Below are positions 2,740 through 56,725 of a stretch of 64,000 nt of DNA, in pieces (position 1 is the stretch's first letter; each line of letters starts with the position of its first letter). Source of the DNA: Podarcis cretensis (taxonomy: Eukaryota); contig OX638153.1 in the NCBI GenBank assembly GCA_951804945.1, positions 64,418,001 to 64,482,000 of the forward strand, given 5' to 3'. The notes under the pieces are model-generated. The model saw only the letters and a program-made list of their open reading frames with translations. It searched no databases and had not been told where the DNA came from. A program made the position numbers and the translations under genes.

Positions 2740-3124
2740 AGGTAAAAAAAGGTAAAGAACCCCTTGACGGTTAAGTCCAGTCAAAGGTGACTCTGGCGTT
2801 GCAGCGCTCATCTCGCTTTCAGTCCGAAAGAGCCGGTGTTTGTCCACAGACAGCTTTCTGGGTCATGCGGCCAGCATGACTAAATTGCTTCTGGCACAAC
2901 GGAACACCTGACGGCAGCCAGAGCACACAGAAACGGCATTTACCTTTCTGCCACAGCGGTACCTATTTATCTACTTGCACTGGCATGCTTTCAAACTGCT
3001 AGGTTGGCAGGAGCTGGGACAGAGCAATGGGAGCTCACTCCGTTGTGGGGATTCGAACTGCACACCTTCCAATCAGCAAGCCCAAAAGCCTCAATGGTTT
3101 AGACCACAGCGACACCTGTATCCC
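2740..3124 (-). mobile_element. Sauria SINE (diverged)
   Basis: AAGGTA tail, the TACCTATTTATCTACTTGCAC core and an approximate TSD TGGCTATRATA. Confidence 0.9.
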
Positions 3125-3576
3125 TATTGGCTATAATAGTATTGTACCCAGCAGAGCCTGCCATGTATAAGCCTTACTTATCTCCAGCTTCCAGTTATCT
3201 AAATTCATTGTGTGTTTGTTGCCCCTTGTTCTGTAGCCCTATATACTTCTGCGTAAAGAGCATTCTATTTTCTGAGAATTTAATTATCCTAGTGTTTTGA
3301 ATTTCCCCCAGGCCATTTAGATAAGTGAAGTTATACCCTGTTACACAATTATCAATTTCTTCTTAAACACAAAGAGCCAAATTGCCTTCACCGGCATCGG
3401 TACAGTGAAACCAGGATTAAATGGAAGGAAAATGTTAATCCTGATTTTATGGGCCAAAGCACAATAGCATCTCAGAAATAAATGTTATTGACTAAGGGAA
3501 GAGGATGGTGTTTGTGTCCTTTCAGGAACATACTATCATGGCTTAATGAATGTTAGAGCAAAATTCTGAATTTTTC

Positions 3577-10127: not shown

Positions 10128-10378
10128 CAGTACCTCAGGTTATAAAGTGTCATAAAGTGGTACCTTAGGTTAAGAACTTAATTTGTTCTGGAGGTCTGTT
10201 CTTAACCTGAAACTGTTCTTAACCTGAGGTACCACTTTAACTAATGAGGCCTCCCGCTGCTGCCGCCACCGCTGCACAATTTCTGTTCTCATCCTGAAGC
10301 AAAGTTCTTAACCTGAGGTACTATTTCTGGGTTAGCGGAGTCTGTAACCTGAAGCATCTGTAACCTGAGGTACCACTG
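10128..10378. mobile_element. Tc1/mariner-type MITE
   Basis: TIR ...TACCTCAGGTTA / TAACCTGAGGTACCACTG with TA flanks and internal AACCTGA repeats. Confidence 0.75.
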
Positions 10379-12072: not shown

Positions 12073-12388
12073 AAAGGTAAAGGGACCCCTGACCATTAGG
12101 TCCAGTCGCGGACAATTCTGGGGATGCAGTGCTCATTTTGTTTTATTGGCCGAGGGAGCCAGTGTACAGCTTCCAGGTCATGTGGCCAGCATGACTAAGC
12201 CACTTCTGGTGAACCAGAGCAGTGCATGGAAACACTGTTTACTTTCCCACTGGAGGGGTACCTATTTATCTACTTGCACTTTGATGTGCTTTCAAACTGC
12301 TAGGTTGGCAGGAGCAGGGACCGAGCAACGGGAGCTCACCCCGTTGCAGGGATTTGAACTGCTGACCTTCTAACTGACAAGCCCTAGG
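12073..12388 (-). mobile_element. Sauria SINE, 5'-truncated
   Basis: Tail and core match the other copies; it ends at GCCCTAGG before the head. Confidence 0.88.
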
Positions 12389-13102
12389 ATTGTTTGGGGA
12401 AAACTGTGACAACTTAACTGGTATAAAACAGCTTCCATACTCCTGCACAAAAGTAATCCCTAATATATTACTTTTATCTGTTTTGTCCCTGCAGTACCCC
12501 AGGACTAATGACGTGACAACCTCCATCCTCTAAATCCATGAAATATTTTGAGAGGCAGAATTGAAGAGAGGGGATGCAGATGAATACATAAAGATAATCA
12601 AACATTGAACATTTTTATTCTGCATTAAGGAATTCAGAATAGCCCCAGTTACCTGGTTCTGTATTCTTTGTCACATGTATGGTTTGCATCCCAAAATTCA
12701 TTCTGAGGAATCAAGTGCAACTGGCAGAGCAACTCCAAGCCCCTTTGTGTCTGTAAGGATGGGGAGGGGCTGGGCAAATATATCCCTCCTATAATCCCTG
12801 CCAGCCTCCATCAACCTCCCACTGACAATTGCTTGTAGTGAGACACCAGCATCACTCCACTGGTGCAGAGCTCCCTGCTTCCACCTGCTGAAAGTGTGGT
12901 CAGGCAGAAATGCCACTGGCAGGGTCCTTGCTTGCATCAGCCAGTGGAAAGATGCTAAACAGGCTTTCTGGAGCCAGTTAGGGATCCAATTTAGGCAGTG
13001 CCATATTTACTTATAAGCTAAACAAGCTGTAGCTTAGGGCCTCACTCTCTTGGGCCCCCCCCAAAAAAAAATTAAAAGAAGAAAACACATGGATGTACAT
13101 TT

Positions 13103-13896
13103 GCTTGTTCAGACCTAGAAACCTCCTCCCTAAATAAGTTCACACTTGACTCAAATTTTGATTTTGGTTTTTGGCAGAATTTAGGCCACAGCTTTATTGA
13201 TTACAGAAAGTGAGTGGTTGCATAGGCTCTGGTTTGACTAGCTCCCTGCCATGCAGGTAGCACTGACCCAGGGTTCCAGCATAGGTCAGCCAAGGGTGAA
13301 CATCTGGATAAGCGGAAAGCCGGAAACAGGCTAACTCTGCCACCCAGATGTCCCCCTGGACTCAGGCACGGGCACAAGCCCCTCTCAGGGGTTGACCAAA
13401 CCATTTGAGTCCCTGGATTCCTTTAATGGAATACCCTTCACATAGGGATGGCGAGAGTGTTCCCTCATCCCTCATCCCTATCACCTGAACCAGAGCCTAT
13501 CCACAACCTTACAAGTTGTGATGATTTGCTACGCGGTAGGCAAAACCCAAATGGCAATAGCCAATCAGCCAAGTGGGGGAAATTCCTGCCGTGCCCCTGT
13601 CCCAATGACAGATGACACACAATGGCATAGCTAGATCAAGCGCAAAGCCCTAAAAGTAGGGAGAGGTGGGCTGGTGTTCCGAATGCACGCGCTGAAAGAG
13701 GAAGCTCTGGGTCATGTGCATGAGCAAAAATAGGTCCCTCGAACCATTTGTACTGCGTCCCATTGGCCAGATAGCACCCAGCTACGAGGGACCTACCATT
13801 CGGGTGTTGTGGCTGACCAATCATACCCACCCACAACACAGGGAGTCAGTTGTCCAGGTCTCACAGCAATACATGCCCTCTTTAAGGGAGGACCCG
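13103..13896 (-). mobile_element. Non-coding 794-bp relative of the YR retrotransposon (solo A-B repeat or internally deleted copy)
   Basis: It shares GGCCACARCTTTATTGATTACAG (13184-13206 vs 44127-44149), a 22/26-identical core (13415-13440 vs 44333-44358) and promoter spacing with the 44-51 kb element. ATTT flanks both sides, and it interrupts a hAT-like host. Confidence 0.78.
13222..13500 (-). ncRNA. Predicted structured cis-RNA domain, homologous to 44168-44429
   Basis: A perfect 13-bp closing stem (13222-13234/13488-13500) with internal helices in the same order as in the autonomous element. Confidence 0.6.
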
Positions 13897-14881
13897 ATTT
13901 CCAAAATATAAGATAAAAAACAAAGAATATAAAACCTACATACAGTGTTTTCTGTTGTGTAGGCTCCTATGATGTAAGTAACTAGCCTACTCCCTAAAAT
14001 ATCTCTGGTTTGCTCATTTCTACATATAGGGTACCTACATTCTGCATGGACTGGTTGCATGGCAACATGTGCAAATGGCTTTAGATAACTATTAGGTCCA
14101 TAAATTACAATATAGCATATATTCAACACACACAAAAAACAGTGGCAATTTGTTGTTGACAAAGGACAGCTGGACATATAAAGGGCCCCATTACCTTCAG
14201 GAGCTTAGGGACTTATCAAACCTATATCCGGCCCTGAACTTAGGTTTCCATGCTATGTGTGTTGTGTGTGTGTTGAGAATGTTGGAAACTCTGAGAGGGA
14301 CCTGCTATCAAAGCAAGCCCATATCAAGAAATGTTGGGGATGAGGGGAGCTGAAATGACCTGGGTGCTATAGGGAGGTCAAGACTGAAGAACCAGAACCT
14401 AAATTTAGCTCACTTGGCAAGCTCAGCAATGCTGAACTGTGTTATTAAATATTAATACAATAAATTTTTTTTAAAAAGATTTCAAAGTGTCCTGGGTGCT
14501 TGTCAGTTTTCCCAGTGCCTCTAGAATTCTGAGCAGTCTTGCAGACCAGTAACTCAGATGACTTTAAAAGAGAATTAGACAAATCTGAAGAGGACCAGGC
14601 TGTTAGTGACAACCACGTATGATGGTTCTGTGCAGCCTACATGTTTCAGTAGAAAAATGTATCACACTACCAGTTGCTGGAGAGCAGCAATGGGAGATGG
14701 CTGCTGCCTTCCTGGGAGTTTTCTGAAGGCAGCTGTTTGGATGGTATGACAGCAGGATGCTGACTAGATAGACCTTGGGCACTTCTTTGTGTGTGTTTTT
14801 CACCCGTTTGCCAAGACAGGGAGAGATGTACCTGCATGCTTTCCTTGGTGCCTTCATAAATAAGGAGGCTAGATAGATTTA

Positions 14882-19412: not shown

Positions 19413-19510
19413 GGAAGAAGGAAGAAGAAGAAAAAGAAACAGTATTTCACTTCCTGTTGCTTTGATAATGCCAATCATTAGCCCTATATGCACATGACTT
19501 GTGTGTATGA

Positions 19511-19861
19511 GGTAAAGGTAAAGAGACCCCTGACCAGTAGGTCCAGTCATGACCGACTCTGGGGTTGCGGCGCTCATCTCACTTTATTGGCCGAGGGAGC
19601 TGGCGTACAGCTTCTGGGTCATATGGCCAGCATGACTAAGCCGCTTCTGGCAAATCAGAGCAGCGCATGGAAACGCTGTTTACCTTCCTGCTGGAGCGGT
19701 ACCTATTTATCTACTTGCACTTTGATGTGCTTTCGAACTGCTAGGTTGGCATGAGCAGGGACCGAGCAACGGGAGCTCACCCCGTCGCAGGGATTTGAAC
19801 CGCCGACCTTCTGATCGGCAAGTCCTAGGCTCTGTGGTTTAACCCACAGCGCCATCTGTGC
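19511..19861 (-). mobile_element. Sauria SINE
   Basis: Full body. TSD TGTGTGTATGA at 19500-19510 and 19862-19872. Confidence 0.92.
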
Positions 19862-26380: not shown

Positions 26381-28109
26381 GTAAAAGTTCCCTGCACAAA
26401 CACCCCTTGACAGATCTGCCTGACAATTGGCAGGTATAATCCACTCTGGATGGCTGTCAAATTAGAATAACACAGAGTCGATCCCAAACAGATCAGACTG
26501 TTTCCAAATACTACAGTAAGTTCCTATAAGCTGCTGCTCTAGAAATTTTTTTAGTTCAGAACTGGCTTTCTTCGTGCCACATAGCCATTAGGGCAAAGTC
26601 AGCTAATGCAAAGTGAGATGCTTAGCTACATGACAAAAAGTCACTGAATGCAATCAACTTTAGGCATATGACAGCATTGTCACCACCAGGCAGAAGAAAC
26701 GTGGCTTTAACTGCAACAATACCAGCAACAGCTACAACAAATGTTTTGCAGCCATGCAATGTGTTGGACTGGTCTGGTATGAGGGCATTGGGGGAGATTA
26801 TTCAGGAAAAGTTTCAAGTACTTGAAAGCTTCCTTTTTCACACAGAAAGTATGAGCCCACAAACATCTGGCACAGCCCTAGTACTGAAGTGGTCTCTTTG
26901 CAGAAATGTGTCTTATTTGTCACAGAATGGTTAAAAATAAAAAATAAAAGTTAAATAGTACAGTTCTTTGCCTGGATATGCTGAAAGGGTAGCATATTAA
27001 GAAATGGGTCCTATCTTGAGGGAAACAAAGTGCTGACAAAGGGATTCTTCAGCTTGACTCCAGAAGGTTTTGTACACACATATTTCCCCCCAAAAAAGTT
27101 GGACATTCGACTACCAAATATGAAGGCACAGAGAACTAATACAATAATATTTAGTATTTTGAAAATACCCATTAAAGTAACATTCGTAATCAGCCCCACC
27201 CCAGCTGCACTGAGGCATTTGCTTTGGCTCACAGACAAGCCACAGAATGGCAGTAGGAGCTTTGGGTTACCTTCTTAGGAAAACACCATCTTCGCAATTT
27301 GAGTGTCAGTGGAATCTGCCAAGATGTCATGCGTCAAGTGAGCTGAGTCCATCACTCCAAAAAACTGCATCAAGTCATGGAAGATGAGGCAAGATTTAGG
27401 ACAGATTCAGCCAGTGTGGACAAAAAAATAAGAGCACTTGCAAATTGGTGATTGGCATTAAAATTAGAAATCCACAGATAGAATTAGGGCATGTATCCAG
27501 AAGTAGAGAAGGCCAGACAAGGAAGGGGCCAAAGGAACAGTATCTGCATAACTGCTTATTTAAGGAATTTTGGCCTAACTGCCTGCGTAGAAAATTATTC
27601 ATGGCATAATGAAAGTGAATAGAAATTTTACTCCATTTTTCATATTAATCAAAGCCAGGGTCATCCAATGGAGCTGAATGTCGGAAGATTCAGGACAAAC
27701 CAAAGCAAAGTAGAATAAAACCCAGCCTTCAAGATAAAACACAAACAGCAAGAGGGGCAGGAACAAAAGTGGAAGTTATGTGAACAGCTGCTGTTGGATG
27801 TAGAACCTCTGAAAGACTGAATTTCCAAAGCCAACTTGATTGATATGAGTACTGGGTGATAATTTGACCCTATCATTTAGGCATTATCATTTTTGTTTGT
27901 TGACCACTTATCAATACAAACATATTCTTTTATTCCATTTTTTTTTTGCATTAAAGGGTTTTATTTACTTCTTCGTAAGACTTGAGTAGTAGTTGTTCAC
28001 GCAATTTCTCCTTCTGTTCTTGCCCAACTTGCTGTTTGTGTTATAAAATATTTGGGGCAGACAAAAAGAAGTTCCACTTCCACACAATGCATAGTATTGA
28101 CTACTACAG

Positions 28110-29881: not shown

Positions 29882-31111
29882 GGTTAGAGAGATGCACTAA
29901 GTCCATATTTGTGAGTCTCTGCACATGGTACCCCTCATGTTGAAAGACTCAAGGCCCATCAATCCTGCTTAATTCTCATATCTGGTCTCTTACTATGGCA
30001 GAGCAGCATCAAGAAAAATGAGGAATATTTGTTTATGAGATTTCTCTAGCCGTGAGTGGTCCTACTGTTAGATAGAGTGAGATGGCTGCCTCAGGCAGCA
30101 GATGCTAAGGGGCAGGGAGTGGACTGAACTGACATAGGTACTGTACCACTTCACTCAGCCTGCTGCCCTCAAGTGCTGTGGAGGACACTGTCCAATTGCC
30201 AGTGTTGAGTAAGATTCATTCAGCAGCCTGGTCAACTTGTGTGCATGGAATAGGGCAGACGCCATCTTGCCCAATGACTCAGATAGCAAAATGCCTATGG
30301 CTCTGTCTCTCCATCCCACCTTCTAATTTAGAAAATGTTAAATATTCTCATGAGGCAGTGCAATGACATTCAGGAGCTTGGACTCCCAATTCCAGAAATG
30401 CCAACATATATTACTCTTCTTTTAGTCAAAGTGCTGCACTTTGCAACCAGCACATTGTAAGCTGCTGCAAACCAGTGATGTGATGCCAATGCGCAATGCG
30501 AAAGAGTAAGGGCAGGGAGATTTATAGAGGAAGCCCTGGTTCTTGATTTCTCCCTTTCCATCTCCCACAGTGTCATGCTGCATATTAAAGTTCCAGAGAT
30601 TTATTCAGGTAACGCTTCTATTTATAAACCCGAGGGCAAGTTACAATCAAGGGAGAGAAGCAAGCACATAGGTGACCATTCATGCAGCTCATCGCAGGTA
30701 GAGAATTGGACATGGGGTACATATGCAGCAGATAATCAATATGCTGGCATTGTTCTCTACAAAATATTCCCTGAATGCCTAAGCACAGCAGATACATTTA
30801 TAAAGAGTATATCCTGCTCTGTAGATAATCCACAGAACAACTGAAGGGATAAATGCCCAGAATTGATGTCATTGTTTGGCCTGGATTCATGATGACAAAG
30901 AATGGCAAGATGATGATGAACCATGAAGGCACATGTTTTTTCTTCATTTTACCTAACAATAGAATGGAGACATTAATAGTGCATCCATTTAACGTGATGA
31001 TTCCAGCTAGGGAAGGGAATTCGTGGGTGAGGGGTGGGGTACAGATGATCTATAGGAAAAGCATGGCAAAGGTTTTCTTTGAGAGCCAGTTTATATACTA
31101 CACAGAGTATA

Positions 31112-31453
31112 AAGGTAAAGGTACCCCTGCCCGTACGGGCCAGTCGTGTCCGACTCTAGGGTTGTGCACTCATCTCACTTAAGAGGCCAGGAGCCAGCGC
31201 TGTCCGAAGACACTTCCGGGTCACGTGGCCAGCGTGACGAAGCTGCTCTGGCGAGCCAGCACCAGCACAGCACACGAAAACGCCATTTACCTTCCCGCTA
31301 TAAAGCAGTACCTATTTATCTACTTGCACTTAGGGGTGCTTTCGAACTGCTAGGTGGGCAGGAGCTGGGACCGAAAGACGGGAGCTCACCGACCATGCAA
31401 TCGGCAAGTCCTAGGCACTGAGGTTTTACCCACAGCACCACCCGCGTCCCTCG
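31112..31453 (-). mobile_element. Sauria SINE, young subfamily, internal deletion near the B-box
   Basis: TSD CAGAGTATA at 31103-31111 and 31454-31462; close to the copies at 35.1 and 46.9 kb. Confidence 0.92.
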
Positions 31454-34084: not shown

Positions 34085-35133
34085 GCGTTGAGTGATAGGC
34101 ATCCATTTTTCATTGGTGCATAAGGGCTAGTTGCTCAAAGGGGGGCAGGAAGACTCATTTCCTCACAGTTTAGCCTGCTGTGTGCATCCCACCATTTGCA
34201 CCCCTCTTTCTGCCCCATTTACTTTGTTTCATATGCTCGGAGTGACCAAAGTTCGAACTACCATTATCTGAGCACCCTTAGGCATTTCTGGAAATCAAAG
34301 TCTCTGTTTAGAAATTAATGATTAATAAAGGAAGATTGCCAGGTTTTCTTGTTTCCAGTATGATACCAACATCCTGCTTGCAGTTATACGTGGTTGAGTG
34401 AACTAATGCATCCTATCCTGCTGGCAAAACCAGCAGGAGGATTTAAGGGCAATGCAGCTATTTCACCCATCCACCATTCAAAAACAAAGTACGATCCATT
34501 GATGTCATGTCATGGCCTCCTATCCTGCAGGCTCAACCTCACTCCAGACAAGAGGAAATAAAGCCAAATTGCAACAGTTCCGGCACAAAACAGGCTCTGT
34601 AGCATTTACTATTCAGTCACACTGATGAGGAGGATCTATGCCAGCCGACATCCATCCATTTTATCAACCACAGATTGGATTCTCCAAGCAGTTCCCAAGA
34701 TTTTAAAGAAATAAAAGGTCACTAATTTAAAAGGTCACTAATTTAATGGCTTTTCAGCAAGCCAGTGTCTTGGAAGCATTGTTTAGAAAATAGGAACAGA
34801 AAAATCTCAGGAATTCCAAATGTTACACCAGATTTTAGTTCTTCGCTCCAGCAGTATTCATGCAGTCAGTTTGGGTAAGTATACTAGTAGTCAGCACAGG
34901 GAAGTTGGAAGCCTGGCTATGCAATGCTGATTGTCTTTTACTTTTATGTATTCATTCATTTCATACGAATAAAGAGATTGTTATATCAAAAAGCACCACA
35001 TAAAATAAAGTAGTTGTACTGCAGAGATGAGATTTAGGAATTACTCTATCAGAGTGCAGAGTATAAACATTTTAAATACATAAAAACCTTCTCTCAATTT
35101 ATTTGTAATTTAAGGTCTGGTACCATTACTATG

Positions 35134-35512
35134 GTGGGACGCAGGTGGCGCTGTGGGTTAAAGCCTCAGCGCCTAGGGCTTGCCGATCGAAAGGTCGGCG
35201 GTTCGAATCCCTGCGGCGGGGTGCGCTCCCGCTGCTCGGTCCCAGCGCCTGCCAACCTAGCAGTTCGAAAGCACCTCCGGGTGCAAGTAGATAAATAGGG
35301 ACCGCTTACCAGCGGGAAGGTAAATGGCGTTTCCGTGTGCGGCTCTGGCTCTGGCTCTGGCTCTGGCCAGAGCAGCTTCGTCACGCTGGCCACGTGACCC
35401 AGAAGTGTCTCCAGACAGCGCTGGCCCCTGGCCTCTTAAGTGAGAGGGGCGCACAACCCCAGAGTCTGTCAAGACTGGCCCGTACGGGCAGGGGTACTTT
35501 TACCTTTACCTT
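35134..35512 (+). mobile_element. Sauria SINE, young and full length, with internal (GGCTCT)n expansion
   Basis: GGGACGCAGGTGGCGC head, B-box GGTTCGAATCC and (ACCTTT)n tail. TSD TACCATTACTATG at 35121-35133 and 35513-35525. Confidence 0.95.
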
Positions 35513-36476
35513 TACCATTACTATGAGCTTATTGTGAAGAATCTGCAAAGCAGGATTCAAAATTCGGATAGAAAAATCTGAAACTTCCCCAGTGGAATGG
35601 ATCTTGCTCTTAAAGAGTGAAAATGAAAATATTGCACCATGCAGTTTTTCTGGGTTTTTAAAACACCCTTCAATATCTGGCACCAGAGGAGCCAATATAG
35701 GCCCACTCGTTAAAGAGCTGTCTTTGGATGCTCAGAGAGAAAGCAATTATGTAACTAAAGAGATGTTTATTGCTAACTGAATGCAATGCAGACATTTGAC
35801 ATGTGGTGCCGTGGTTAGTAGGTTGGACGGGTGAAGTGATGGACATGAGGCAGGAGTTGATAATGCAGGTGAGCTGTGCACAGGTGGGCTGCATGCAAGC
35901 TGCCAGCCAGCTCTGTGGAGCCTCCTTTTTCTGACACAAATATGCTAACCAGGCAGATTCATTTTGGGCTGTGACCTTTACACATCTTCCAGTCTCGAGA
36001 TTGTGGGGTGATACAAAGTTATTTTGGCACCTGTTTCCACCGCATCATTTTCCCCTTGCACAGTGTATGACGAAGCAGACAAAAGGTCTCAGAGACAAAG
36101 GTTACAGACAGGACACCACAGGCTACTGAGACCGCAAAAGGTTAGAGAGAGGGTACGATGTTCAGACAGCTGTAGCTTTGTTTGTGAGGGGGAGGTGCCC
36201 CACACCCCAAGGTCACGCGTGCAGGCAGACTGTGGCTGCCTGCGGGTGGGGAGTGTGCTCCCTCCGGACCCCATGGTCATCCCTACAGACGGGGACTTGG
36301 GAGAGTAGGGTTCAAATCCACACTTGGCCACAAAGCTCACTAGGTGATCTTGGGTAAGTTACAGCCTTTCAGCTAAATCTACCTCACTGGGCTATTGTGA
36401 TGAAAAATATGGGGATGGAAAGAACCATGAATGCCACCTTGAGTTCCTTAGAGGGAAGCTGGGATACAAATGTATA

Positions 36477-42500: not shown

Positions 42501-44126
42501 AGCCTCACTGATGTGGTCCAAAGGAAAGCAGAGGAATAAGTTTGGCACCAGCTTGGCTGCAGGAGTTGCTGGAAGGAGGTGTACAAGGTGCCATCCAACC
42601 GTCTTAGGGACTCCACTTCAGATATGTGTACAGTTTATTCCTTAGCCTTTTCATCTCCCAAATATGTCCTTCAAGGCAACAGGTATAGATTTTTTCTCAG
42701 CGTTTACTCCTGAAGTCATTCTCATGAATGAGTATAGCCGCCAGGCAGTAGGACCAGAGTTTTCTTCTCCTAGATAGGTTACTTTCCCAGTAAATACACA
42801 AGTTAATATTTATATAAGAAAAAGATAGAGTACAAAGATAATGTGCACACACACACTTAAGTATCCTGTTATAAAATGAAACTGTTTCCATTAAGGCAGG
42901 CTGACAGAGTTTTGCTCCAAAGAAATGTCTGTTTCAAAGTCATAACCCAGTGTCCTTTGGTATGGAAATCACTCAGCTGAGGTGATAATCAACTGCTAAA
43001 GGAGCATCCCAAGCCAAGGCCTTCACCCTTTCCTTATCTTAATGGCCCATCAGTATCTTTGAAGTGGTAAACTCGGCAAGTCTCAATTCTTTAATCTTGT
43101 AAGGAACCACCACTTGGAGAATCTTTTAAGAATATTAAGTGGAGCTGAGCTTCAAAGGAAGTAGTCTCAATTCACCTGACCATGAGAGCCTTGTTAACAT
43201 TGGCTGAGGCAAAGAAATTAGAATTTTAAATTCATTCCTAGCCCCTTGAAGTTGATTGGCCCAGTACCCCAGAGGCCACCACCTCTCCTTCACTCCTATT
43301 GCCTTTGAAAAGAGACTGGGATCCCTACAGCAAGGAATCTCATGTTACTTCCAGGGGACTATCTGCCCATTTGAAAACTTGAGTATAATTGCTTAAGGCT
43401 GCGGGGTGGAGGAGGCAAAGGAATGGTGGGCGGCCAACTGATGTAGAAGCAATAAACATAGATCTGATCTCCCTTGGGCGGAAGATCCCGTCGCCTCATA
43501 TAAGAGCAGGCTAAAAATAATAAATAGTTGTGGGTTTTTATTTATTATTTAAGTAACCATAGCTCTGGCTTGTGCTAACATTCAGAGAAGTCTGTGTATA
43601 GAAGTTAGCCTTATGTTTTGATTTCCTCCTTTTTCACTTGTCCATGCTTGTTGATGCTTCCTATCTCTCTGTATGCTATCAATGAATATACAGGGCCTCA
43701 GAGAGGAATTTTATCAGGGGTATAAAGTTTATTTTGGGCTCCTTTCCTTGCCCATCAGTCATCCTGTTTTTATTCACTAAGGATTTATGCCATGAGCTCT
43801 AGCCTGTGAGATCAAAAAGGGCACTGAAGTCAAGAGGGGGTGGAATGGAGTGCTCTGTTAATTTTATGCATTTAAGGCCTTGTACTCTTATGCTCCCTCT
43901 ACGATAAATATAAATAAATATAAATAAAATAGGATCGGAGATAAGAAAGCATTTTTGACTTGAACATCATTGCTTATGCTACCAATACAGATAAGGAGAA
44001 ATAATTCACAACAAAGCATCCTTTTATATTGCAATGCAGATCAGATTGCGTGGCAATTCCCGCCCCCTCCCACAGTTGGAGAAATAAAGACACTGTACAC
44101 AGACTTTGAGGTTAATGGGCGTAAAT

Positions 44127-44149
44127 GGCCACAACTTTATTGATTACAG
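44127..44149 (-). terminator. Poly(A) signal of the YR element
   Basis: AATAAA at 44136-44141 in CTGTAATCAATAAAGTTGTGGCC, followed by GT/T-rich sequence. The same motif is at 13184-13206. Confidence 0.7.
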
Positions 44150-44167
44150 GTAAGAGCGGTATTGGCT

Positions 44168-44429
44168 TTAGGCATTGGCCCTAACAGACTATCCGGTCTA
44201 ACCGGGAAGGGATTAAAACCGCCAGGGGGAGACCCCGAGATGCACATCCGTAGGCGCTCCCCAATGGGTGGCCGCTCGGGGGCGCGCTTTAGGCCCTAGC
44301 CTCCGTAGGTTTCGGACGAGGCGACGCCCCCCGGAGTCCTTTAACGAACTACCCTTCAAGACCTGGGGGAGGTGATGGCGTCCCTCCCCCCAACTTCATT
44401 TGCATAACAATACCCCTGCCAATGCCTAA
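44168..44429 (-). ncRNA. Predicted structured cis-RNA domain in the 3' UTR of the YR element
   Basis: A perfect 12-bp closing stem (44168-44179/44418-44429) encloses several hairpins. The same topology occurs at 13222-13500. Paired by eye only. Confidence 0.62.
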
Positions 44430-44462
44430 CCGCCACACGAGCCAGGCTCGCCCCCAATACCC

Positions 44463-45029
44463 TCAGACCTGTAACCAATCCCTGATCCCCTGAAAAATGT
44501 CAGCCAGCCAAATATCATTACCGGCATCGGAAAGATGCACGCCATCCCTGCGGTAGAGTGTTTCCTTGCTGAATTGGATGCCTGGGTGCTCGCCCACCAA
44601 TTGCAGCCACTCTCCGCGCCACCGAGCGCTCCAAGAGTCTTCTGGCTCTACCCACAGCCACGGGATTAGTGGCGTCCCGCCAGCAGCGCCTTTCCAGCAA
44701 AGATGACCATATAATTGTAAGCTTTGGATATGAGGCCCTAAGCATCTCAAGATCATTGCAAATGTTCCACATCAAGTCAATCCCCTTTCTATAAGCCAGG
44801 TCATTCTCGCCCAATTGGATGACGAGTGCCTCTGGTGGTCCCTACGCTGCGATTTTATTTGATAAAGTTGGGGAGAATTCCTCCCAACGCATTCCCCGAC
44901 GTGCAATCCAAGAAACTAAAACATTGCTCGGGAGCCGGAGATCGCCACCAAAGCCCCTGGCAACCACCCGCATTCTTGCCCAATGGACGATGCTGTGTCC
45001 AAAGATCCAGATTCGTACGACACCAAGAC
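44463..45029 (-). pseudogene. SGNH/GDSL-family hydrolase ORF of the element (one stop, one frameshift)
   Basis: My translation gives RIWIFGHSIVHW (block I Ser), RRGMRW (Gly), IQLGENDL (Asn) and DGVHLS (His). There is an in-frame TAG at 44842-44844 and a frameshift near 44590-44600. There is no ATG; a splice acceptor lies at 45030-45032. Confidence 0.85.
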
Positions 45030-45093
45030 CTGAAATTAAGAGAGAGCAAGAGAACCAGGTCAGGGGGGGCAGATGGGGGCAGGGAAGGAAGCT

Positions 45094-45972
45094 TTAGCGA
45101 GATTTACGGATGTAACCCTTATATGCGTCCGACTTCCACCGCCCCAAGTCCATTATCCTTTCTGCTGGTAAACCCATATGGACTGCGGTGGTGGCTGCCC
45201 CAATGCGGAAGGAGTGAGCCGCGTACTCCCGGGATGGAAGTCCAATGTCTGTGATCGCTTTGCGCATGACCCTGGTGAACTGGTGCTTCGTCAAGCGAGA
45301 ACCATCAGCATGAATGAAAAAAGGGCCGCTCATTTTGGGTCTTACGCAAAGAAACTTTCTGGCGTCCTTGACTGGACACGGGCCAGCCTTCTGGGTGGCT
45401 TGCAGGCAAACCAGAGCCCCTCTGCCGAGCTGGTCGGTCTTTGAACTGCGGATTTTCAGGATTACCACGGAGCTGGAACAAGAAACATCCTCCAATAGAA
45501 GACCCCTGCTATTACTAACCAGCTGGTCGTCACAGACCACCTCGCCTATGCGTAAGGCACCGAAGAATGCGAAGGAAAATGCTGAGGAAAATAACCTGGC
45601 CTCGTATCTAGACCAGCAGATAACCCGGAGCTTTGAACGGATTTGCATAAGTATGTCAAAAGTTATGGGCCTTCTGCTGTCGGAACTAGGGGGCTGCGAT
45701 CTCCGCCAGCCTTCCAGCATTTTCCGCACCACAAAGTGTGCGCAAGGGTCCACTGAAAATAGAGCTTTGGAGAAGAATGATATTGCTGCGGAATGAATAT
45801 TAAGGGTTTTTGGGGCTCGCCCCAGGTCACGGAGGCACACAAGGTATTCAATAACCTCCGACTTGCGTGGGGGTCTGCCCGGTTTAAAGAGCCCTTTCTT
45901 CTGGCGAAACATTGTGAAATCTAACCAGGCCTTGTTATAAGATCTCAGGGTAGAGGGTGCGACTGCGGACAA
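45094..45972 (-). CDS. Tyrosine recombinase of the retrotransposon
   Basis: The catalytic set is intact: GALRIGE (R), SKTDQ (K), HSFRIG (HxxR), GRW and AYKGY (Y). The frame extends upstream into the RNase H end, through a TGA at 45991-45993. Confidence 0.93.
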   Translation of the reverse strand: MSAVAPSTLRSYNKAWLDFTMFRQKKGLFKPGRPPRKSEVIEYLVCLRDLGRAPKTLNIHSAAISFFSKALFSVDPCAHFVVRKMLEGWRRSQPPSSDSRRPITFDILMQIRSKLRVICWSRYEARLFSSAFSFAFFGALRIGEVVCDDQLVSNSRGLLLEDVSCSSSVVILKIRSSKTDQLGRGALVCLQATQKAGPCPVKDARKFLCVRPKMSGPFFIHADGSRLTKHQFTRVMRKAITDIGLPSREYAAHSFRIGAATTAVHMGLPAERIMDLGRWKSDAYKGYIRKSR

Positions 45973-45980
45973 TACTCCCT

Positions 45981-48354
45981 TTATTGCTTCTCATTGCCAA
46001 TATTCCAGAGGTGCTCTGGAAACGGTTGCGGCTGCAGCTGCGCATCCGGCGCCAATGAGCAAAAGCACTCCATCTGGAAACGAGACAGAGCATCCGCAAT
46101 GTTGTTATCGATACCTGGCACAAATCTAGCAGAAGCATATAGGTTTAACCGGAGGCAAGAAAGGACAAAATATCATAAGAGCGACGCTACCCTGGGCGAA
46201 CGAGAAGATTGTTTATTTAGCACGGACACCACTGCCTGGTTGTCTGTCCAAAAGCAAACCCTGCGGTCTTTGAACTGCTCGGCCCAAAGATGGATTGCAA
46301 CCACAATGGGGAAGAATTCTAAGAATGTTAAATCGCGAAGTATGGGTTTTTCCTGCCATGCGGGGGGCCATCGCTGAGCACACCACTGCCCTCTAAAATA
46401 GACACCAAAACCCAGGGAGCCGGCTGCGTCTGAATGCACCTGAAAGTCAGACTGCAGGGCCAAGGTATCTTGCCAGAGAGAGATTCCATTATAGCCATCT
46501 AAAAATTGGAGCCAAATCTGGAGATCCGACTTTACGGCTTTTGAAAGGTGTACCCTGTGATGAGGTGACCTAAGTCCCGTGGACAGTTTCGCCAGTCGAC
46601 CGCAAAAAGGGCGACTGGGGGAAACCACCCGGCACGCGAAGTTAAGGTGACCCAGGAGTGATTGAATTTGTCTCAGGGTGATTTTCCACAACGGCACAAG
46701 CTGAGAAATAAGGTCTTTTAAGGCAACCAGCTTCACAGAGGGCAGACGGGATGTTTGGGCAACTGTGTCCAACTCGATGCCTAGGTAAGTCAATGAAGTG
46801 ACCGGACCCTCCGTCTTTTCATTAGCCAAATGAACGCCCAGCTCCTCGGCCATGGACATGAAAGCCTGGAGCAAAGCCTTGCAGCTATCGGCATTACTTG
46901 CAACCAAAATAAAAAGGTAAAGGTAAAGGTACCCCTGCCCGTACGGGCCAGTCTTGACAGACTCTGGGGTTGTGCGCCCATCTCACTTAAGAGGCCAGGG
47001 GCCAGCGCTGTCCGGAGACACTTCCGGGTCACGTGGCCAGCGTGACATCGCTGCTCTGGCGAGCCAGAGCCGCACACGGAAACGCCGTTTACCTTCCCGC
47101 TGGTAAGCGGTCCCTATTTATCTACTTGCACCCGGAGGTGCTTTCGAACTGCTAGGTTGGCAGGCGCTGGGACCGAGCAGTGGGAGCGCACCCCGCCGCA
47201 GGGATTCGAACCGCCGACCTTTCGATCGGCAAGCCCTAGGCGCTGAGGCTTTAACCCACAGCGCCACCTGCGTCCCTAACCAAAATAAAGTCGTCCAAAT
47301 AATGCCCGACCCCCTCCGAGCCAGTTTTTTCTTTTAGCGCCCATTCGAGGAAGGTACTAAATGTATCGAAGGCGGCGCAAGCGATGGAACACCCCATAGG
47401 CATAGCCTTATCAATGAAGTAAGACCCTTGGAATTTAAAGCCTAGCCAACGATAGTCCTCCGGGTGAACTGGGAGGAGGCGAAATGCTGATTCTATGTCG
47501 CATTTTGCCAGGAAAGCACCCCTAACGAAAGCTCGAACCAACTTTACGGCTTGATCAAAAGAAGCATACTTCACCGTGCACAGTTCTTGGGGAATGGCAT
47601 CATTAACTGAGGCACCTTTAGGGTAAGACAGGTTGTGTATCAACCTGAATTCACCAGGCGCCTTTTTTGGGACAATACCAAGTGGTGAGATATGGAGCTG
47701 ACCAATGGGGGGTGCTGTAAATGGACCAGCTACTCTCCCCGCCAGAATCTCCTTCTGAATCTTTTTCCAGGCAATGTCGGGTCTCTCTAGGACCGACTTC
47801 TGATTGGGGGGGCAGCCGGTATTTGGGGTAAATACCACTGGGATTCTGAAACCTTGGGAAAACCCTTCCCCAAGGAGAAGGGCGGCCTGTCTATTGGGGT
47901 ATTGATCTAACAGGGTTCTTAGGGGTTGAAGCTTAATCGGTGAGCGGGCTAAATCAAGGGACAAGTTAGTAGCGATTCCCAGCTGCCCCTTGGGCGGGTC
48001 CTGAAGCACCAGAGGGGGCACCCCGGTTTCCCTGGTATGGGTGCCCCCTGCCGCCACGAAAGGGCTGTTGTTTTCCCTTATGGCAGTTAACAGCCGAGTG
48101 GTTGCCCGAACACTTGTCGCATTCGTGCAAGTACTTACAAGAAGTGCGCTGGCAGGCCCCTCTATTGAAGTCCCAGCATTGCCTACGGCGTTTTGAGTCA
48201 ATCTTACCAGACTTAGCTTGGTCATGTGATTTCTTTTCGATATTCGGCCCCACATGCTCCATCCAGTAGTTATTGTCTCTCTGATCCCAACGTGTGGAGG
48301 ACTGCAGCGAGGCATTCCTGCGAAAGTCCTCGTCGTACGAGATGGCGGCCTCAT
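45981..48354 (-). pseudogene. Reverse transcriptase / RNase H (pol), disrupted
   Basis: RT motifs ISPLGIVPKK..FRLIHNLS, KCDIESAFRLLP, MPMGC and YLDDF. RNase H motifs HSDAAG, FLEFFP, WTDN and NNIADALSR. Removing the SINE (46914-47277) plus one TSD restores YLDDFILV-ASNADSC in frame. A premature TGA lies at 46173-46175 and the natural TAA at 45981-45983. The frame overlaps the gag 3' end. Confidence 0.92.
46914..47277 (-). mobile_element. Sauria SINE, young and full length, inserted in the RT
   Basis: 5' GGGACGCAGGTGGCGCTGTGGGTTAAA head and (ACCTTT)n tail. 12-bp TSD AACCAAAATAAA at 46902-46913 and 47278-47289. Confidence 0.95.
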
Positions 48355-49468
48355 CCCCTGCTAATTCCTGAGCCCTTCTTACTTGCGCCAGGTAAGATGC
48401 AAGGTGAAAACCACGTTTTGGATAACAACCTGCCACTATACCCATGGATACCTGGTAGCCATTGAGCCAATTCTCAAATGTCCGTTCAGCCCGCGGGGAC
48501 CTATATCTTTTCTTACCATAATACCATTTCTTCTCTCCTTTCCCCTTCATTTGTGCCGGCGGTAGCAGGGTGAACATGTCTACGAAATCCCCGTTCAAGA
48601 TCTTATCCCTCTTTCTCTTAGATAGGTGATTACCCAGAATAAAGTCAGTGGACAAGTGAGTTGAGACTTTAACATCTTCAACTAACGCCCCATCCTTCCA
48701 CTCCAGGGTACCATTAAAGGTTTGCCTGTGGGAATTGGCCCGCCTCTCATGCACCCACAAAGGAACACCAGTCTCTTCACCCTCACCCCAATACGTCTCC
48801 ATGGGAGCATCACTATCGCTCTCTGACGAAGAAGTACCTGTGTCATTGTCTGAGTCAGATGGATCACTTCTCCTGCTCTTCTTGGACACATGTTTCTTCT
48901 TCGCTTTTCGCTTCCCTCCGTTGGTCTTGTTGACTTGCGGTGCTGGGTCATTGTCAGCTGGAGCTGGCTGCTGGGGAGGTATCTCCTCATCTGAGGACGA
49001 CCCTTCCGAAGGACACTGCTGGGCTGGAAAATCCTGGAAAACACTAGGTATACCAATTTGCTGTTGGTTAGAATTAAGGGGGGCCGCCTGCGGTGCACTG
49101 GGTTTATGCCCGGAGGCCTTAGACTTTTGGGCACCGGACCTGGCCTTCCGCGCTGTAGGTTTGGACTTCTGTGCGTGTGCAGTTTGAGACCGAGTCAGAG
49201 GCCGGTTGGGCTGCCCCCTACCTTGATGGGACGTGCCCACTGTTGCTGTGGAGGGTACAGCCTGGCCCTGTTGGCTGGGAGGAGTGTCTGGAATGCAGTC
49301 CTGAGAAACCTCCACTATATTGGGATTCGGGGCAACAGGCGCGCTGCATTGTGCGTAAAAGGTTTGGATCGCTGAGAAAAATTGTGCCAAGGCCTGAGGA
49401 TTGCAGGGAGCAACAGGCATAAGTGTGCCACTCGATTGTGGCAATCGGGGATTGCCCCTGTTCGCCAT
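47966..49468 (-). CDS. Gag-like ORF1 of the YR retrotransposon, 500 aa
   Basis: Uninterrupted ORF with a low-complexity N-half, a basic patch (KRKAKKKHVSKKSRR), an 'ILNGDFVDMFTLL' block and a C-terminal Cys/His finger CWDFNRGACQRTSCKYLHECDKCSGNHSAVNCH, as seen in DIRS/Ngaro Gags. Confidence 0.88.
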   Translation of the reverse strand: MANRGNPRLPQSSGTLMPVAPCNPQALAQFFSAIQTFYAQCSAPVAPNPNIVEVSQDCIPDTPPSQQGQAVPSTATVGTSHQGRGQPNRPLTRSQTAHAQKSKPTARKARSGAQKSKASGHKPSAPQAAPLNSNQQQIGIPSVFQDFPAQQCPSEGSSSDEEIPPQQPAPADNDPAPQVNKTNGGKRKAKKKHVSKKSRRSDPSDSDNDTGTSSSESDSDAPMETYWGEGEETGVPLWVHERRANSHRQTFNGTLEWKDGALVEDVKVSTHLSTDFILGNHLSKRKRDKILNGDFVDMFTLLPPAQMKGKGEKKWYYGKKRYRSPRAERTFENWLNGYQVSMGIVAGCYPKRGFHLASYLAQVRRAQELAGDEAAISYDEDFRRNASLQSSTRWDQRDNNYWMEHVGPNIEKKSHDQAKSGKIDSKRRRQCWDFNRGACQRTSCKYLHECDKCSGNHSAVNCHKGKQQPFRGGRGHPYQGNRGAPSGASGPAQGAAGNRY

Positions 49469-49577
49469 GATGTCAATTGGAGAAAAGTGGGACCGACTGA
49501 GTAAGTATGACTATGAAACCTTGGTAAATCTGACCAATTAGGTTAACTGTGAATGAGTCAGCTCTTTCAGTTTACAA

Positions 49578-49738
49578 NNNNNNNNNNNNNNNNNNNNNNN
49601 NNNNNNNNNNNNNNNNNNNNNNNNNNNNNNNNNNNNNNNNNNNNNNNNNNNNNNNNNNNNNNNNNNNNNNNNNNNNNNNNNNNNNNNNNNNNNNNNNNNN
49701 NNNNNNNNNNNNNNNNNNNNNNNNNNNNNNNNNNNNNN
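49578..49738. other. Assembly gap (N run) in the YR element 5' leader
   Basis: 161 Ns. Confidence 1.
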
Positions 49739-50976
49739 TTATAAGCAACGTGGTATCTGTTTAACAATCAAGGCAAGAGACCGCTCCGAATAGCCCCGAA
49801 ACAATTAAACAATCCAGGAAGCCGACAGGGGAAAAACTTGAAAGAGAGGGGGGCAAGCGGCAAGTGGGTTAAAATGAGTGATTAGCCGGTAGCTTCCACC
49901 ACCACAGAGCACCTTTAAATTAGAACACTCTCTAAATCACTGTTAAATTACCCCTGAGCTAAATTAGAATTAAAATTAATGGTGTTAATGATGGTCGCGG
50001 ACCCTAAATGAAAGGGGCTGCCGCCTATGGAAGGGGGTACCTAAGCGCTGATACCAGGCAGCGAACCTCCAGCCTCCGCTGTTGTGTAAATTAAAACAGT
50101 GAGCAAGAACTGGACACAAGAAAGCCTAGTTCCCACGTGGCTTGCCTCACCCAAAATGGCTGCCGCCGCAAGACCACGTGGTCACCCAAAATGGCTGCCG
50201 AAGGCTGTCTCGTTGTTTAGCAACGCCACACAAAGACGCAGCAGCAGCCCTTAGGCGGTGAAAACCGGGAAAACCCAAAACAAACTGCTCTCACAATACA
50301 ATAAGCCCAAGTACTAAGCGTGCTGAGAAAAACCAAAACCTACTAAAGGGCACTGAGCGTCAAAGATGTGGCAGCAGGGAAAATGCAGGAAAATAACCAC
50401 CCCACAAGCAAGGAACCCGCGTGCTCCAGCGATCAGCGGCTGAACCCCCCAACAGAATCAATCGCAATTAGCCAGATACAACCTGATCCGAAGCGTAGCC
50501 ACGAGGCCAGCGAGAAGGAGGAAAAAGGGGGGGGAGGCTGCGCAGGAAGCGACCAGCTGGCCAGCGGGGTGAACGCGAGGCCAGGTAGCGCTGCCGCCTT
50601 CGGGTGGCTCACTCTGCCGCGGAGGGTTATCAGAAGCAAACGAAGAAAAGCTGGAGCCTGCCCCGATCCGTGGGCGAGGCGGGAAGTCGGCTGCGTAGCT
50701 AGGGGATGGGCTGCGGTCCTGCCAGTCAGCGTCTTGTCCAAAATACTCCGGGGAAATTCAGCGGCGCTGGAAAGAAGACTAGCTCCGCTCAGAAGCAGTA
50801 GCTCGATAAGTCACACGAACAGGAGAAACGATCATGCAAAGCGATCCCGCGAAACGATCCTGCAAAAACGCAATTCAAAAGGGAGAAGCAAGCACGAGGT
50901 AACAGCAAACAAACCCAATACAAATCAAAACGTGAGGGTGAGCCAGCAGCTGCTAAAAACTGCAGCTGCTGAGAGA

Positions 50977-51050
50977 GAAAGAGGGTGAGCCGGGGCTGCC
51001 CTGACCTTAAGAGGAACCCGGTAAGCCCGCCCCCTGCGCCAGCCGATTGG
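50977..51050 (-). promoter_or_regulatory. Putative Pol II promoter of the YR element
   Basis: On the minus strand: CCAAT (51046-51050), GC box GGGGCGGG, TATA-like CTTAAG (~51006-51011), then the pyrimidine initiator-like CCTCTTTC (50977-50984). The CCAAT-to-initiator spacing is mirrored at 13694-13766. Confidence 0.6.
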
Positions 51051-56372: not shown

Positions 56373-56725
56373 AGAAAGGTAAAGGACCCCTGACAGTTAA
56401 GTCCAGTCGCGAACAACTCTGGGGTAGCTTTACAGGCCAAGGGAGCCACTGTTTGTCCGCAGACAGTTTTTCTGGGTCATGTGGCCAGCATGACTAAGCC
56501 GTTTCTAGCGAAACCAGAGCAGCGCACAGAAATGCCATTTACCTTCCCATCAGAGCAGTACCTATTTATCTACTTGCACTTTTTGGGGTACTTTCAAACT
56601 GCTAGGTTGGCAGGAGCTGGGACTGAGCAATGGGAGCTCACCCCATCACGGGGATTTGAACCGCCAACCTCCTGATCGGCAAGCCCAAGAGGCTCAGTGG
56701 TTTAGACCACAGCGCCACTCACATA
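56373..56725 (-). mobile_element. Sauria SINE
   Basis: TSD TAACATTCAGTTA at 56360-56372 and 56726-56738; conserved core. Confidence 0.92.

Follow-up and report, generated by a model that had tools for sequence, protein, structure and literature searches.

A stretch of 64,000 nucleotides from the lizard Podarcis cretensis (GenBank assembly GCA_951804945.1, contig OX638153.1, positions 64,418,001 to 64,482,000), which we call the window, contains on its minus strand a broken copy of a retroelement with gag, reverse transcriptase (RT) and tyrosine recombinase (YR) genes at about 44.06-50.2 kb. Between its last stop codon and its poly(A) signal is a multi-stem domain closed by a long helix (P1). 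A small, gene-less element elsewhere in the window carries a counterpart of this domain, and the two copies are related by compensating base changes in several helices. The domain probably represents a structured cis element that is new for YR retroelements. The features under discussion are listed below as the minus strand is read, those of the autonomous, gene-bearing element before those of the small, non-autonomous one.

47966-49468, minus strand: gag-like open reading frame (ORF) with a weak CCCH zinc-finger match
47251-48354, minus strand: reverse transcriptase ORF fragment with an RVT_1 match
45094-45972, minus strand: tyrosine recombinase ORF with a Phage_integrase match
44463-44756, minus strand: last ORF fragment, its stop codon 34 nt before P1; possibly the C-terminus of an SGNH hydrolase, as a lead only
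44168-44429, minus strand: structured domain of the 3' untranslated region (UTR), 262 nt, closed by P1
44127-44149, minus strand: conserved tail block CUGUAAUCAAUAAAGYUGUGGCC, which includes the poly(A) signal and ranks among the highest in summed depth
44060-44126, minus strand: weakly conserved 3' extension past the poly(A) signal, end approximate
13501-13900, minus strand: upstream section of the non-autonomous element, with no relation to the autonomous ORFs, matching the consensus of an abundant family and containing CCAAT/ATTGG boxes
13222-13500, minus strand: structured domain of the small element, 279 nt, closed by a 13-bp P1
13184-13206, minus strand: conserved tail block of the small element, with AAUAAA

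The domain is essentially the entire 3' UTR of the autonomous element, because the stop codon at 44463 is followed on the minus strand by P1 (44429 to 44168) and soon afterwards by AAUAAA (44143-44138). The spacing from P1 to AAUAAA is 24 nt in the autonomous element and 25 nt in the small one. BLASTN and local alignment found only two parts of the two copies to be alignable, the tail block (22 of 23 positions identical) and the part from P2 to P4 (about 70% identity); weak similarity extends to about 44082 in the autonomous element and about 13132 in the small element. Upstream of P1 the two elements are unrelated, and only the domain and the tail are common to both. Spurious ORFs across the domain do not exceed 67 amino acids.

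The autonomous element has the two hallmarks of the YR (DIRS-order) retrotransposons, an RT domain and a tyrosine recombinase in place of a DDE integrase, and by its gene order it resembles the Ngaro elements. The RVT_1 match of the RT fragment (E 3.7e-6, 27.2 bits) falls slightly below the 29.6-bit cutoff. The copy in this window is dead, since its frames are broken and its RT region is split at 46913-47288 by a repeat like a short interspersed nuclear element (SINE), of which the window has six further copies.

Predicted fold of the two domains

The predicted helices of the two copies are the following.

44418-44429, minus strand: P1 5' arm, 12 bp with 44168-44179, probability about 1, four double compensatory changes relative to the small element
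44168-44179, minus strand: P1 3' arm, partner of 44418-44429
44365-44390, minus strand: P2 hairpin, a stem of a G run and a C run, with a phased G-C to A-U change at 44386/44369 in another copy (run X3)
44333-44353, minus strand: P4 hairpin with a GUUAAA loop and a 2-bp extension, inside the conserved motif UGAAGGGUA..UUAAAGGA.UCC
44278-44331, minus strand: P5 helix (44325-44331 with 44278-44284) and the sub-branch that it encloses
44226-44262, minus strand: P6 helix region, variable, with a weak match to the small element and a dip in summed depth
44206-44211, minus strand: candidate P3 3' arm CCCUUC, proposed partner 44352-44357, invariant, a minor conformer
44193-44205, minus strand: P7 hairpin, counterpart in the small element ambiguous
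13488-13500 with 13222-13234, minus strand: P1 of the small element, 13 bp
13415-13435, minus strand: P4 hairpin of the small element, AUUAAA loop

Every arm of the helices listed in the initial annotation of this locus is complementary on the minus strand where it was placed. The annotation had also claimed that two diverged relatives among the YR retroelements share a covarying domain at their 3' ends, with the same fold arising from mostly unalignable sequence. This was borne out for P1, P2, P4 and P5, and it was not supported for P3, an invariant minor conformer, or for P6 and P7, whose matches are ambiguous. We regard the conserved core of P1, P2, P4 and P5 as real. The Boltzmann ensemble assigns P1, P4, P5 and P6 probabilities of about 0.8-1.0, in the autonomous and the small copy alike.

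Covariance models were built from one copy at a time, with the small-element model using that copy's own predicted structure, and 128 kb were searched. The small-element model finds the autonomous copy from the first to the last model position (44429-44168) with 27.3 bits and E 1.1e-7, and has no further match up to E 10. The autonomous-copy model likewise finds the small copy end to end (35.1 bits, E 1.7e-8), and beyond it only four short matches with E values of 0.9-6.7. A structure-free model of the same alignment reached 15.9 bits and covered model positions 28-93 only. Canonical pairs are present in the autonomous copy at 56 of the 69 aligned pairs (81%). The model-guided alignment keeps 12 of 13 pairs in P1, 7 of 7 in P5 and 12 of 18 in P6, and there are four double changes in each of P1, P5 and the last hairpin. 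In P4 it contains one double change and one change from U-G to C-G, both of which had been annotated. RNAalifold gave -79.5 kcal/mol, including -9.75 from covariation.

P1 is the cleanest case of covariation because conserved flanks fix the position of both arms. The arms differ at 4 of 12 positions, and each difference is compensated, leaving no mismatch. We roughly estimate the chance of this pattern arising without selection at about 1e-5, a figure of our own reckoning and not the output of a tool. The window has only four loci at which the arms of a perfect inverted repeat of at least 12 bp are separated by 200-320 nt, and the P1 helices of the two elements account for two of them. The other two, at 10130-10373 and 27738-28042 (13 and 15 bp), may be small elements with terminal inverted repeats.

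As a control for similarity of shape, the minimum free energy (MFE) structures of the two copies were compared with anchored shuffles, in which the P1 arms and the P4 motif were retained and the remainder was shuffled. The tree similarity of the two copies beats these shuffles on two metrics (7/300 and 1/300) and is not significant on a third. A helix like P5 occurred in about 5% of shuffles, and P5 together with P6 in about 1%, by criteria that were chosen after the data had been seen.

Two minor features adjoin the closing helix. A small hairpin lies directly 5' of P1 in both copies, CGAGC-CUG-GCUCG at 44430-44460 and ACAAC-UUGUAAG-GUUGU at 13501-13525, on the minus strand. The short motif UGUGG stands just before P1 and occurs again in the tail block after AAUAAA.

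Abundance and variants in public reads

Parts of the stretch occur in sequencing runs from five organisms. Contigs of three DNA-type runs, from different organisms, and the raw reads of one RNA run were placed on 43900-44900 at 80% likeness. Summed contig depth, which is not to be equated with copy number, was 1-5k over the ORF part in run X1 and 240-400k over 44104-44171 (the tail and the 3' arm of P1) and over much of 44274-44375 (the 5' side of the P5 sub-branch, P4, the 5' arm of P3 and the start of P2). It falls to 60-75k in the same run over 44376-44443, which holds the remainder of P2 and the 5' arm of P1, and a dip to 16-89k covers P6 and P7 (44172-44273). Runs X3 and X10 have the same contrast, each at its own scale. 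Taken together, the domain and tail have a summed depth about 100-fold higher than that of the ORFs.

Past 44435 most copies depart from the autonomous sequence, and the consensus of their loose ends agrees with 13505-13535 of the small element. This places the small element in the abundant family, which shares only the module and the tail with the autonomous element. In at least one diverged contig (run X3, record 18) the sequence runs from the ORF on into the domain, so that the module belongs to the autonomous lineage by origin and is not a nested insertion.

Several variants fall within helices. The change 44347 A>G, which accounts for 10-39% of summed depth, converts a U-G pair of P4 to C-G; the majority P4 allele has U-G. 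The change 44418 G>A and, in the loose-end consensus, a T at 44179 would together turn a C-G pair of P1 into U-A, although these changes are unphased. One loose-end consensus from run X3 has 44369 G>A with 44386 C>T, a phased replacement of G-C by A-U in P2 and a third copy of this part of the domain. As to further copies, motif scans of viral contigs found none, and the 11 matches of a metagenome scan and the 6 of a bacterial-genome scan were all unrelated chance hits.

Possible functions of the domain

We give an even chance to the domain being a cis-acting, structured 3'-UTR recognition module of a Ngaro-like YR retroelement that has been borrowed by an abundant gene-less family. On this reading the module fills the interval from the last stop codon to the poly(A) signal and is closed by a P1 of 12-13 bp. 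Its core would consist of the G/C-rich P2, P4 with its RUUAAA loop in the invariant motif, and P5 starting right after P4, with the variable P6 and P7 next. The RT or Gag protein of the element may recognise this fold near the 3' end of the RNA, leading to template selection and the start of complementary DNA (cDNA) synthesis, and we infer that the gene-less family, having retained the module and the tail, could be copied in trans. The initial annotation had suggested recognition by RT or Gag, which fits, as nothing but the domain and the poly(A) block is shared with the non-autonomous family, whose summed contig depth is roughly 100 times that of the ORFs. Its accompanying ideas of priming, of a function like that of hepadnaviral epsilon or a retron, and of a ribozyme found no direct support.

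A comparable arrangement is known from the stringent shared tails of long and short interspersed elements (LINEs and SINEs), such as eel UnaL2/UnaSINE1 and the zebrafish LINEs, in which likewise only the 3' end is common to the autonomous element and its abundant partner, and a conserved stem-loop is required for recognition by the element's protein (PMC1636434, PMC4176376). Those tails consist of one short hairpin and a repeat tail, and they belong to elements without long terminal repeats (non-LTR) that use target-primed reverse transcription, whereas the lizard module accompanies a tyrosine recombinase and is a closed multi-stem domain, about 270 nt long, that precedes the poly(A) signal and for which recognition would hold by analogy. 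The lizard elements do have a shared 3' module, with its structure kept by compensation in P1, P4, P5 and P2 (not in P3, P6 and P7). The LINE/SINE type, however, is a non-LTR element with an endonuclease, and the present element, with its tyrosine recombinase, is an analogue of that class and not a member.

The R2 element offers a second likeness, in that its 3' UTR is a few hundred nucleotides long and has a fold better conserved than its sequence. This 3' UTR RNA is also structured, and it is bound by the RT protein to start cDNA synthesis (PMC11194090, PMC10499050). R2 differs in being a site-specific non-LTR element whose pseudoknot is bound in solved complexes, whereas the lizard domain is known from sequence and predicted fold, with no match in Rfam. 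The initial annotation knew of no description of the fold, and a covariance-model search of 43000-51000 and 12400-14600 found no Rfam family matching within the domains up to E = 10 on either strand. The domain is thus a candidate new RNA family absent from Rfam, and our literature search brought up no account of a structured 3' UTR domain for Ngaro or DIRS elements.

How the YR retrotransposons choose their templates and prime their cDNA is an open question on which the domain bears. If the recognition reading is true, the domain is the first defined candidate for a cis signal in this order of elements, and it extends the rule of shared LINE/SINE 3' tails to a third class of retroelements. 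It would also supply a defined RNA of about 270 nt, its helices and motifs named, on which binding, probing and mutational tests could be made.

Several observations weigh against recognition of a selected RNA fold. Only two full copies of the domain were compared, and the structural alignments were fitted to the model, which inflates pair counts. The MFE of the autonomous domain has a z-score of -1.75 against plain shuffles and +0.5 against anchored shuffles, so that it is no more stable than the latter. P3 (AAGGG/CCCUU) never varies and hence has no covariation; it competes with the conserved 2-bp extension of P4, has a probability of 0.17 in the autonomous and 0.29 in the small element, and costs about 1 kcal/mol when forced. 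The equivalence of P6 and P7 is weak, with P6 aligning poorly and two hairpins in the small element at the place of the single autonomous P7. The complementary (plus) strand folds to a mirror architecture with z-scores of -3.3 and -6.2 when treated as RNA and of -2.3 and -4.4 when treated as DNA, equal to or better than those of the sense strand. The RNA run contributed 94 reads, mostly from paralogs, and its domain reads come from both directions, with no pile-up of read ends and no defined ends seen in the domain.

It is unlikely that the domain acts as the initiation RNA of YR-retrotransposon reverse transcription itself, with P1 and the P4 motif bringing the RT and the 3' tail into position for priming by the RNA itself or by a protein. 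In that case it would function much as hepadnaviral epsilon or the a1/a2 stem of retrons does, and non-autonomous elements would spread by carrying it. The a1/a2 inverted repeats of the retron msr-msd close a structured template RNA that is recognised by a dedicated RT, as P1 closes the lizard domain. Retrons prime from the 2'-OH of a branching G beside the closing stem, at the end of the transcript, whereas in the lizard element a tail of about 45-60 nt and a poly(A) signal follow P1, and no branching G can be inferred. Within the YR order, the primer of DIRS-1 is described as unknown and its RT as acting in trans (PMC7192593), and Poulter and Goodwin (cited in PMC7192593) suggested that a 14-nt hairpin at its 3' end acts as a self-primer. 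DIRS-1 resembles the lizard element in belonging to the same order and in having a 3' structure suspected of starting reverse transcription. DIRS-1, however, comes from Dictyostelium and has both inverted terminal repeats and an internal complementary region, whereas the lizard element is a vertebrate, Ngaro-like one with a large multi-stem domain and no terminal repeats found.

The domain could also bind a host factor for export, stability or 3'-end processing of an intronless transcript, in the manner of the retroviral constitutive transport element (CTE) or the RNA transport element (RTE) of intracisternal A-particles (IAP). Both element types would then keep it for expression and not for recognition by RT. 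The CTE and RTE are themselves located in the 3' region, and the lizard domain adjoins the poly(A) signal upstream at a conserved spacing, has a multi-stem fold with conserved loop motifs and is kept by a gene-less family. No cis-regulatory element in Rfam matched it, however, and a closing helix with sharing limited to the extreme 3' module is what stringent recognition by RT predicts. We consider this explanation improbable.

We are similarly doubtful that the fold acts in single-stranded first-strand cDNA, which has the plus-strand sequence, and not in RNA. It would there serve second-strand priming, end joining or as a recombinase substrate, comparable in principle to the attC sites of integrons, which are folded single-stranded substrates of a recombinase. 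The mirror fold of the plus strand, with its z-scores as RNA and as DNA, agrees with this idea, as does the presence of P3 in the plus-strand MFE structure of the autonomous copy, and Watson-Crick compensation cannot distinguish the strands. DIRS-1, moreover, amplifies via linear single-stranded cDNA (PMC7192593). Against this, the sense fold has 8-9 G-U pairs that would become A-C mismatches on the other strand, compared with 5-6 in the reverse direction, and the majority P4 allele forms a U-G pair, which only the sense RNA can accommodate. Because of these pairs we lean, weakly, to the sense RNA as the acting form.

Absence of any selected structure is slightly more doubtful still. The domains would then be residual homology in G+C-rich sequence that forms stems easily, and the covariation an artefact of structural alignment. 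The folding energy of the autonomous copy is compatible with this, as are the tree metric that was not significant, the post hoc criteria for P5 and P6, and the sample of two sequences. Folding energy, which the initial annotation had offered as a check, gave a divided answer, since the small element has z-scores of -5.4 against plain and -3.8 against anchored shuffles. The fully compensated differences in P1, the reciprocal end-to-end model matches with only the four short matches elsewhere in the 128 kb, and the phased compensatory change of P2 in a third copy also argue for selection.

Two further explanations have very little in their favour. A self-cleaving ribozyme that processes the transcript, as the initial annotation had suggested, would suit a compact multi-stem fold within a retroelement, and other retroelement classes do carry ribozymes, but the failure of any Rfam ribozyme family to match on either strand up to E = 10 and the lack of a pile-up of RNA read ends make it highly improbable. 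The interpretation of P1 as the terminal inverted repeats of a nested DNA transposon, similar to a miniature inverted-repeat transposable element, was rejected as scarcely credible despite the 12-13-bp repeats, the TA at both ends, the length of 262-279 bp and the high abundance, because the depth profile shows that the repeated unit does not end at the inverted repeats: high depth and a shared consensus run past both P1 arms (44104-44167 and beyond 44435), and the 3'-side flanks are homologous in both copies, with the same spacing.

Other features of the autonomous element and the window

The recombinase has homologs in the lacertids Podarcis muralis, Lacerta agilis and Zootoca vivipara at 57-65% identity (E down to 1e-122), and is about 46% identical to a gecko homolog and about 41% to one from Anolis sagrei. 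Amphibian Ngaro elements have an SGNH hydrolase ORF after the recombinase (PMC9210276). The last ORF fragment of the lizard element had no match in Pfam, NCBIfam or the PDB, and a BLASTP search against P0002 was blank; its atlas neighbours are GDSL/SGNH fragments at 0.89, a weak lead. The fragment ends with DGVHLS..G, which is reminiscent of block V of the SGNH/GDSL hydrolases.

The split direct repeats of Ngaro elements (A1 ... B1-A2-B2) were not found at 18 nt or more around the autonomous element, whose 5' region is partly masked by 161 consecutive N at 49578-49738, within the 5' UTR region. The small element has no meaningful direct repeat of 14 nt or more, and neither covariance model found a further copy of the domain as a candidate A1 repeat. 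Inverted terminal repeats with an internal complementary region, as in DIRS1-like elements, were not found either; the sole inverted pair (21 nt, 86%) lies far outside the shared ends.

The SINE-like repeat that interrupts the RT region is about 350-390 bp long, and its seven copies in the window have 74-93% identity. ARAGORN detected no tRNA-like part in the repeat and no tRNA-like genes in the window. The copies are as follows.

46913-47288: SINE-like repeat, in the RT region
35126-35513: SINE-like repeat
31110-31451: SINE-like repeat
19510-19858: SINE-like repeat
12073-12388: SINE-like repeat
56375-56718: SINE-like repeat
2916-3126: SINE-like repeat

Upstream of the gag-like ORF, at 50147-50200 in the minus-strand sense, are two direct copies of the 19-nt sequence CGGCAGCCATTTTGGGTGA, each followed by a CACGTG E-box. 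From their sequence these repeats look like a promoter with YY1-type sites. The small element has a similar sequence, GCCATTTGGGT, at 13545-13560, which lies about 45 nt upstream of its P1.
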